A DNA stretch of 47,406 nucleotides, from positions 579,074 through 626,479 of the forward strand of contig NW_026867467.1 in the NCBI RefSeq assembly GCF_020745735.1, read 5' to 3'. How positions within the stretch are numbered: the first letter of the stretch is position 1; each line of letters opens with the position of its first letter. This document shows, in pieces, positions 19,383 through 20,116 of this stretch. Position numbers and translations under genes: made by a program. The DNA is from Hemiscyllium ocellatum (taxonomy: Eukaryota). A model generated the notes under the pieces. The model saw nothing but the letters and a program-made list of their open reading frames with translations, was not told the DNA's origin and did no database searches.

Positions 19383-19688
19383 GTGTCCAGTCGGAGGTTG
19401 TTTTGACCCAGCCAGAGGCAGAGACTGGCCGTCCCTCAGGCAGCCTGAAACTGACCTGTAAAACCAGCGGGTTCGATCTCAGCAGCAGCTACATGAGCTG
19501 GGTCCGCCAGGTTCCCGGCCAGGGTCTGGAGTGGCTGGTTAGCTACTATGGTTCATCCAGCAATAACTATGCACCAGCGATTAAGGGTCGATTTAGTGCG
19601 TCCAAAGACACTTCAAAGAACATTTTCGCGTTGGAGATGACTAACCTGAAGATCGAAGACACCGCCATCTATTACTGTGCAAGTGGGT
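19383..19688 (+). CDS. IGHV: VH exon of shark IgM (probably carrying a pre-joined D1 remnant at its 3' end)
   Basis: CVQS|[98 protein letters not shown]; conserved Cys, Trp and YYC; open frame. Confidence 0.97.
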
Positions 19689-19726
19689 CACAATGCTGTG
19701 CACAGCGACATCCTCATACAATAACC
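19689..19726 (+). other. Recombination signal sequence, 22-bp spacer
   Basis: Heptamer CACAATG 19689-19695, spacer 19696-19717, nonamer ACAATAACC 19718-19726 (8/9 consensus). Confidence 0.92.
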
Positions 19727-20029
19727 ACTGACAAGGATTTATCTCAAATTGGTGATTTCTACCGTGGCAGGAGCGAGAAATAATGTGAGATGCAATTTAA
19801 ACACAATCCAGTCGTGCTAGTTTGTACAAATGTATAATTGTTTTCTACCTTCTTCGTGTTGATTGTCAAGTTAAATGCAGACCAAACCTGGAAAAGTATT
19901 CCAAGCTTTCAAAATACAATGAATAGTAAAAGCTGAAATAATGCACCAAATCATTTTTAGAGGAGTCTGAATCACTGCTTTCTAGGAAGTGAAGAAATTA
20001 TTTGCATTTTACAGTTTACAGTCTGTCAT

Positions 20030-20057
20030 AGTATTTGACACAACGTGTCTCACAGTG
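20030..20057 (-). other. Recombination signal sequence, 12-bp spacer, 5' of the D-J segment
   Basis: Top strand AGTATTTGA (20030-20038), 12 bp, CACAGTG (20051-20057). Functional strand reads CACTGTG-12-TCAAATACT (nonamer 6/9). Confidence 0.8.
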
Positions 20058-20116
20058 ATATAGCTGGTACTATCTTGATTACTGGGGCCAAGGGACCATG
20101 GTGACAGTGACTTCAG
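20058..20116 (+). CDS. IGHJ: Pre-joined D-JH segment (YSWYYLDYWGQGTMVTVTS)
   Basis: A TAT AGC TGG TAC TAT CTT GAT TAC TGG GGC CAA GGG ACC ATG GTG ACA GTG ACT TCA G|GTAAG; WGxG motif; no RSS between the D-like bases and J. Confidence 0.92.

Follow-up and report, generated by a model that had tools for sequence, protein, structure and literature searches.

An apparently germline-joined VD1-D2J IgM heavy-chain cluster with one rearrangement left to make in Hemiscyllium ocellatum

Among antibody genes, pre-joined ones are peculiar to sharks and skates, and they bear on two issues, whether RAG is active in germ cells and whether the young are protected by hard-wired receptors. The locus described here, from Hemiscyllium ocellatum, raises the question of which joins of a V-D1-D2-J heavy-chain cluster are already in place in the assembled sequence, and whether what is left could still yield an antibody. 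The window, by which is meant the whole stretch of 47,406 nucleotides that was analysed, holds one complete IgM heavy-chain minilocus of the cartilaginous-fish type, spanning 19229-40147 from leader to TM2. Motif searches and self-BLAST of these 47 kb found a single V-like element, a single J-like (WGQG) element and one set of C exons, and no second Ig cluster. After the split leader and V-set VH exon come a single JH (WGxG, with a splice donor), four Cmu exons of the C1-set type, the mu tailpiece and a pair of TM exons, all inside ~20 kb. From the promoter to J, the features are as follows.

19133-19141, plus strand: TATA-like box (CATATAAAT) upstream of the leader, in a block conserved (88%) with L001, a paralogous cluster of the brownbanded bamboo shark, Chiloscyllium punctatum
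19229-19277, plus strand: leader exon, with its ATG at 19229 and donor GTGAGT at 19278, encoding MIVSTIFLSLLLTFLS and matching the leaders of P0001 and P0014
19383-19688, plus strand: VH exon fused to a D1 remnant (Pfam V-set, E 7e-17)
19689-19726, plus strand: D1-type 3' RSS (CACAATG, 22-bp spacer, ACAATAACC)
19727-20029, plus strand: D1-D2 intersegment spacer, with homology to the D1-D2 spacers of L001 and L004, a second C. punctatum cluster
20030-20057, plus strand: D2-type 5' RSS (AGTATTTGA, 12-bp spacer, CACAGTG)
20058-20116, plus strand: fused D2-J coding piece of 59 bases, reading YSWYYLDYWGQGTMVTVTS, then donor gtaaga

The VH exon has the acceptor ttttttaaag and a 3' end reading TGT GCA AGT GGG T; its CDR1 is SSSYMS and its CDR2 YYGSSSNNY. 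The two RSSs are convergent, of the 22/12 type, and are separated by 369 bases from coding end to coding end. A preliminary description of this DNA had placed exactly one such pair between VH and JH, and all of its coordinates and the 369-bp distance hold. It had also claimed that no RSS splits the D-like bases from JH and that the window has no other D or J, with which the RSS scan, the motif searches and self-BLAST agree. A permissive heptamer/nonamer scan of the whole window gave no further RSS candidate at 19727-20029. The same scan revealed neither hidden D segments nor degenerate RSSs in this interval.

Downstream of J, the constant region is made up of the following exons.

30258-30563, plus strand: Cmu1 exon (C1-set, E 7.5e-15), spliced in frame from J
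33670-33981, plus strand: Cmu2 exon (C1-set, E 8e-19), in frame
35960-36268, plus strand: Cmu3 exon (C1-set, E 5e-14), in frame
36716-37107, plus strand: Cmu4 exon with secretory tailpiece (C1-set, E 2e-22)
39872-39999, plus strand: TM1 exon, with a match to a nurse-shark membrane primer at 39871 and a spliced reading ...DKSSDSIDRTWIEDYEDDNSNIWTTASTFITLFFLSIFYSAAVTLVK
40139-40147, plus strand: TM2 exon (VK, stop)

Cmu4 with its tailpiece aligned end to end with solved IgM Cmu4 domains (e.g. 6kxs and 8bpe, E about 1e-51). An internal membrane-splice donor (G/GTAAA) follows position 37045 within Cmu4, and AATAAA is found at 37103. The C exons, the secretory tail, the internal donor, TM1 and TM2 read through without a stop and splice in frame; the intact C exons with both secretory and membrane ends that had been described are thus all open, with C1-set matches.

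Within the J-Cmu intron, ~550 bp past J, lies a 45-bp tandem repeat (20661-20913; 5.6 copies, 76% matches, unit CTGTTGAATTGAGTTGATTGGATTCTGACTTTGTTTTACTTGATT), which may have a regulatory or switch-related function. Around the repeat, the intron shows conservation with its C. punctatum paralogs. Transposon debris is found on either side of the cluster (12430-13065 and 13000-13620 on the plus strand, 44280-45050 on the minus strand) and includes a reverse-transcriptase-like frame with a YIDD motif. Proline-rich and GIY-YIG-like frames at ~13.5 kb and ~44.8 kb share TPWLNTLTPPPTPPRT in opposite orientation.

To identify the pieces between V and J, unjoined clusters were needed for comparison. 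A protein search with the V exon of the window returned shark VH genes, and the DNA around seven of the hits was taken, which gave nine clusters in seven loci. The best protein match of the window V was a VH of C. punctatum, at 88% amino acid identity, and no identical copy of it was found in the protein database. Two C. punctatum clusters, L001 and L004, were used as the unjoined V-D1-D2-J references. In these, V ends in TGTGCAAGAGAC and is followed by a 23-RSS; D1 (ATACTACAGTGGGT in L001, ATGCGACAGCGGGT in L004) is flanked by a 12-RSS and a 22-RSS; D2 (ATATAACTGGGGTGA in L004, starting ATATAGCTG in L001) canonically lies between two 12-RSSs; and J, which begins ACTATCTTGA(T/C)TACTGGGG, is preceded by a 23-RSS. 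Both of the canonical C. punctatum clusters sampled are damaged. In L001 (11296-11504), the D2 3' end, the D2 3' RSS and ~180 bp of D2-J spacer are gone, and this cluster is probably unable to complete VDJ. In L004 (10440-10520), the V heptamer is mutated to CGCAGCG and V is frameshifted (gene model P0014), which makes it a likely pseudogene.

By BLAST, the window aligned with L001 and L004 as three collinear blocks, separated by two clean gaps whose ends fall at coding ends.

Up to 19683 (promoter, leader, V): identity of 88% with L001 and 87.5% with L004
19682-20066 (D1 tail, D1-D2 spacer, D2 head): identity of 93% with L001 and 91% with L004
From 20069 (J and intron): identity of 95% with L001 in the first 330 bp and 92% with L004

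These identities to C. punctatum (88-95%) are at the level of paralogs and put the DNA within Hemiscylliidae or close to it. The D1-D2 reference of L001, comprising both RSSs and the spacer (370 bp), aligned over its full length to window positions 19689-20057 at 93.0%, and window positions 19682-20067 were 91.2% identical to L004. When four kinds of spacer were run as separate queries, the D1-D2 spacer was the sole type matched by the window; the V-D1 and D2-J spacer references gave zero matches there. The RSS that follows V agrees with the D1 3' RSS at 34 of 38 positions in L001 and 35 of 38 in L004, but with their V RSSs at merely 14-15 of 38. The 12-RSS of the window is identical to the D2 5' RSS of both references (28/28), against 6-8 of 28 positions shared with the D1 5' RSS. 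Being near-identical or identical to the paralogous D1 3' and D2 5' RSSs, the two signals are not chance matches.

The V-D1 spacer is therefore absent from the window, D1 bases stand at the end of V and the next RSS is of the D1 3' type. The D2-J spacer is likewise absent, together with both of its RSSs, and D2 bases abut J. What has been retained is the D1-D2 spacer with a convergent, 12/23-compatible pair. Because the spacer, RSS and segment-remnant identities all fit, the cluster is assigned the configuration VD1-D2J; this had been proposed in the preliminary description and is borne out by alignment with the unjoined paralogous clusters, through the D1-D2 spacer (93%/91%), the type of each RSS, what is left of D1 and D2, and a J of full length. 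V-DDJ and VDD-J configurations were excluded, since the retained spacer matches D1-D2 only and the V-D1 and D2-J references are without a match. The signals that remain, a D1-type 3' RSS and a D2-type 5' RSS, naturally belong together as the pair for D1-to-D2 joining.

Both existing joints can be read base by base. The V part ends ...TGTGCAAG and is followed by the D1 tail TGGGT (19684-19688), which lengthens to AGTGGGT when the shared AG is assigned to D1, such that the V-D1 joint reads GCAAG-TGGGT on a shared AG and every base is accounted for. V has been trimmed by AGAC (about 4 bases), or by six bases if AG is credited to D1, and the last 5-7 bases of D1 remain. The D2-J joint reads ATATAGCTGG-T-ACTATC, where ATATAGCTGG represents the first ten bases of D2 (20058-20067). 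JH is untrimmed (20069-20116), the J of L004 being identical to it, and at most 1-2 bases of this joint are untemplated. For the single T at 20068, a variant D2, a P nucleotide (GT/AC is palindromic) and an added base are all conceivable origins; the available D2 copies differ at this position. An N-region stretch is found in neither joint (GCAAGTGGGT and GCTGGTACTATC). Lee et al. (2000, PMC2193156) likewise reported 'little evidence of TdT activity' in shark light-chain genes joined in the germline, unlike in somatic joints.

The proposed course of events starts from an ancestor that would have had the order V (23-RSS), (12) D1 (22), (12) D2 (12), (23) J. Two RAG-type coding joints, V to D1 and D2 to J, would have become fixed in inherited DNA, leaving the D1 3' 22-RSS and the D2 5' 12-RSS, convergent and 369 bp apart, as the same pair that serves the canonical D1-to-D2 step. 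The 22/12 pair conforms to the 12/23 rule. Because the remaining signals are the natural convergent D1-D2 pair, a single deletional recombination in a lymphocyte would suffice to complete the VDJ exon, with excision of the D1-D2 spacer. The frame of the D2 remnant is fixed by J and is free of stops, the D2-J side reading YSWYYLDYWGQG. A flush D1-D2 join is out of frame, as either side contributes a surplus base; frame is restored by removing two bases or adding one, and if both ends are shortened by a base the product reads C-A-S-G-Y-S-W-Y-Y-L-D-Y-W. The sources of diversity would be a single junction after C-A-S-G, through trimming and N/P addition, and later hypermutation.

Joined clusters were also found in the relatives sampled. 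Of the nine clusters, five are VDD-J (four in C. punctatum and one in Scyliorhinus torazame) and one, from the whale shark, is VDJ. In the VDD-J layout, a D2-type 12-RSS comes after the fusion of V, D1 and D2, and beyond it lie the D2-J spacer and a J that has a 23-RSS. The VDD-J clusters are at the following positions.

L002:11676-12140, C. punctatum
L002:1820-2300, minus strand, C. punctatum
L003:10451-10900, C. punctatum
L007:10454-10900, C. punctatum
L005:5841-6300, S. torazame

The two L002 clusters are inverted relative to one another and ~8 kb apart; in the cluster on the minus strand, J is damaged (TGG to TGT) and the donor is poor. In the whale-shark cluster (L006:10179-10560), which comes from a chromosome-level assembly, V is fused directly to J (gene model ...YYCARDWGGSLHYWGQETMVTVTA), a fully joined VDJ. 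VD-DJ was seen in 0 of the 9 relatives' clusters (seven loci), which provide no orthologous joint that would show the window joints to be old.

At each break in the window, both flanking RSSs are wholly gone and a few coding bases have been trimmed, a pattern that marks coding joints as opposed to ordinary deletions. Loss of the two spacers by ordinary deletion, through slippage or recombination between RSS heptamers, is hardly credible, although such deletion is known in these clusters, L001 being without its D2 3' RSS and ~180 bp of its D2-J spacer. Both breaks in the window fall exactly between two coding ends, with the flanking RSSs fully removed and few coding bases trimmed, and if recombination had run from heptamer to heptamer, V would carry no D1 bases at its end, whereas the window keeps TGGGT. 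If the joints are of RAG type, the assembly might still have captured a somatic, partly rearranged (2R, VD-DJ) lymphocyte allele of a locus that is V-D1-D2-J in the true germline. In the nurse shark, VD-DJ does arise as a somatic intermediate, both in B cells and in thymocytes (PMC2435157). However, somatic junctions are clonal and rare, and a given cluster is unrearranged in most cells, such that a consensus assembly should show the germline form; N regions are missing from both joints; and joined clusters are present in independent assemblies of related species. A captured somatic allele is consequently regarded as very improbable, and a germline origin of the joined form as likely, judging from assembly logic and from the relatives. 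Of the earlier claim that two joins were made in the germline, the presence of both joints in the assembled sequence stands, while their germline timing is probable.

A truly germline-joined cluster could also be a silent relic that is no longer rearranged or expressed, and we regard this as a serious possibility, if somewhat short of an even chance. Joined H-chain genes of the horned shark yielded no detected transcripts (PMC2193156). The heptamer CACAATG is non-consensus and the nonamer of the 12-RSS is weak (6/9), but the critical CAC is kept in both RSSs and the canonical clusters have an identical 12-RSS, the weak nonamer being the normal D2 signal of the family. Many C. punctatum paralogs are defective, including L001 (D2 3' RSS lost), L004 (V heptamer and frameshift) and the minus-strand L002 cluster (J); against this, the window cluster has only open exons across its 21 kb, TM1/TM2 included, and its splice sites, the internal donor among them, are good. 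The promoter, which had been described as looking intact, gives a divided picture: the TATA-like CATATAAAT at 19133 and an upstream region conserved with the paralogs are in its favour, but a search of the 330 bp ahead of the leader (18900-19235) gave no canonical octamer (ATGCAAAT or its complement, with up to one mismatch), which is a further point for a relic. Expression of the cluster is given roughly even odds. More tentatively, and rather doubtfully, the cluster may be used as a light-chain-like one-step heavy chain with a semi-invariant CDR3 (C-A-S-G-x-YSWYYLDY-W), one variable junction and preferential expression in early life; if true, it would be a graded intermediate between the fully hard-wired IgM1gj and conventional IgM.

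Taken as a whole, the locus is with good confidence read as an orectolobiform IgM minilocus, closest to Chiloscyllium, in which the V-D1 and D2-J joints have been made in inherited DNA and one step is left. As the exons Cmu1-4, the secretory tail and the TM exons are intact, the cluster is potentially functional. We infer a germline RAG origin of the joints, continued cleavage of the RSS pair and expression of the product.

VD-J, VD-DJ and VDJ germline forms of H-chain genes are a regular feature of cartilaginous fish (PMC5192425, PMC2193156, PMC4279169), and the VD-DJ form is explicitly named in a review (Mashoof and Criscitiello 2016, PMC5192425). Lee et al. (2000, PMC2193156) described H-chain clusters as rearranged, partially rearranged or non-rearranged, and explained the joining by RAG acting in germ cells. 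Because partly joined H-chain clusters are described in the reviews and by Lee et al., the window cluster belongs to a long-known class of pre-joined shark and skate antibody genes, and general knowledge is unchanged by it. For the white-spotted bamboo shark, 37 IgM clusters have been counted, their V(D)J configuration not being described (PMC8692893). In the searchable literature no published description of the window cluster, or of any VD-DJ IgM cluster in bamboo sharks, was found, and the J motif of the window gave 0 matches in papers.

The nurse-shark IgM1gj resembles the window cluster in having a germline pre-assembled IgM V region and a restricted CDR3, and has been proposed to serve neonates (PMC4279169, PMC5192425). 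It is, however, fully VDJ-joined and lacks Cmu2, whereas in the window the RSS pair and the 369-bp spacer remain, one rearrangement is still needed and four Cmu exons are present, Cmu2 among them (33670-33981); the distinction from IgM1gj drawn in the preliminary description is thus upheld. The somatic 2R VD-DJ intermediates of nurse-shark lymphocytes (Malecek et al. 2008, PMC2435157) have an identical topology, but they are clonal products of single lymphocytes, whereas the window cluster is an assembly consensus without N additions. Closer at hand, the VDD-J clusters of L002, L003, L007 and L005 likewise have two joints done and one to go, and share the same V, J and intron family. They differ in the pair left open, which is the D2 3' 12-RSS with the J 23-RSS in the VDD-J clusters and the D1 3' 22-RSS with the D2 5' 12-RSS in the window, and hence in the spacer retained (D2-J and D1-D2, respectively). 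Because the open pair and retained spacer of the window are those of D1-D2, its variable junction would lie in the middle of CDR3, in contrast to a position next to J in the VDD-J clusters. With the partly joined clusters of the literature (PMC5192425, PMC2193156), the window cluster shares the minilocus type and germline-fixed RAG-type joints with trimming and no N regions; compared with that reviewed class, the window copy is fully intact from leader to TM2. As a clean and intact VD-DJ example, in which both joints can be read against unjoined paralogs, it is a useful annotated case and a good target for repertoire work.
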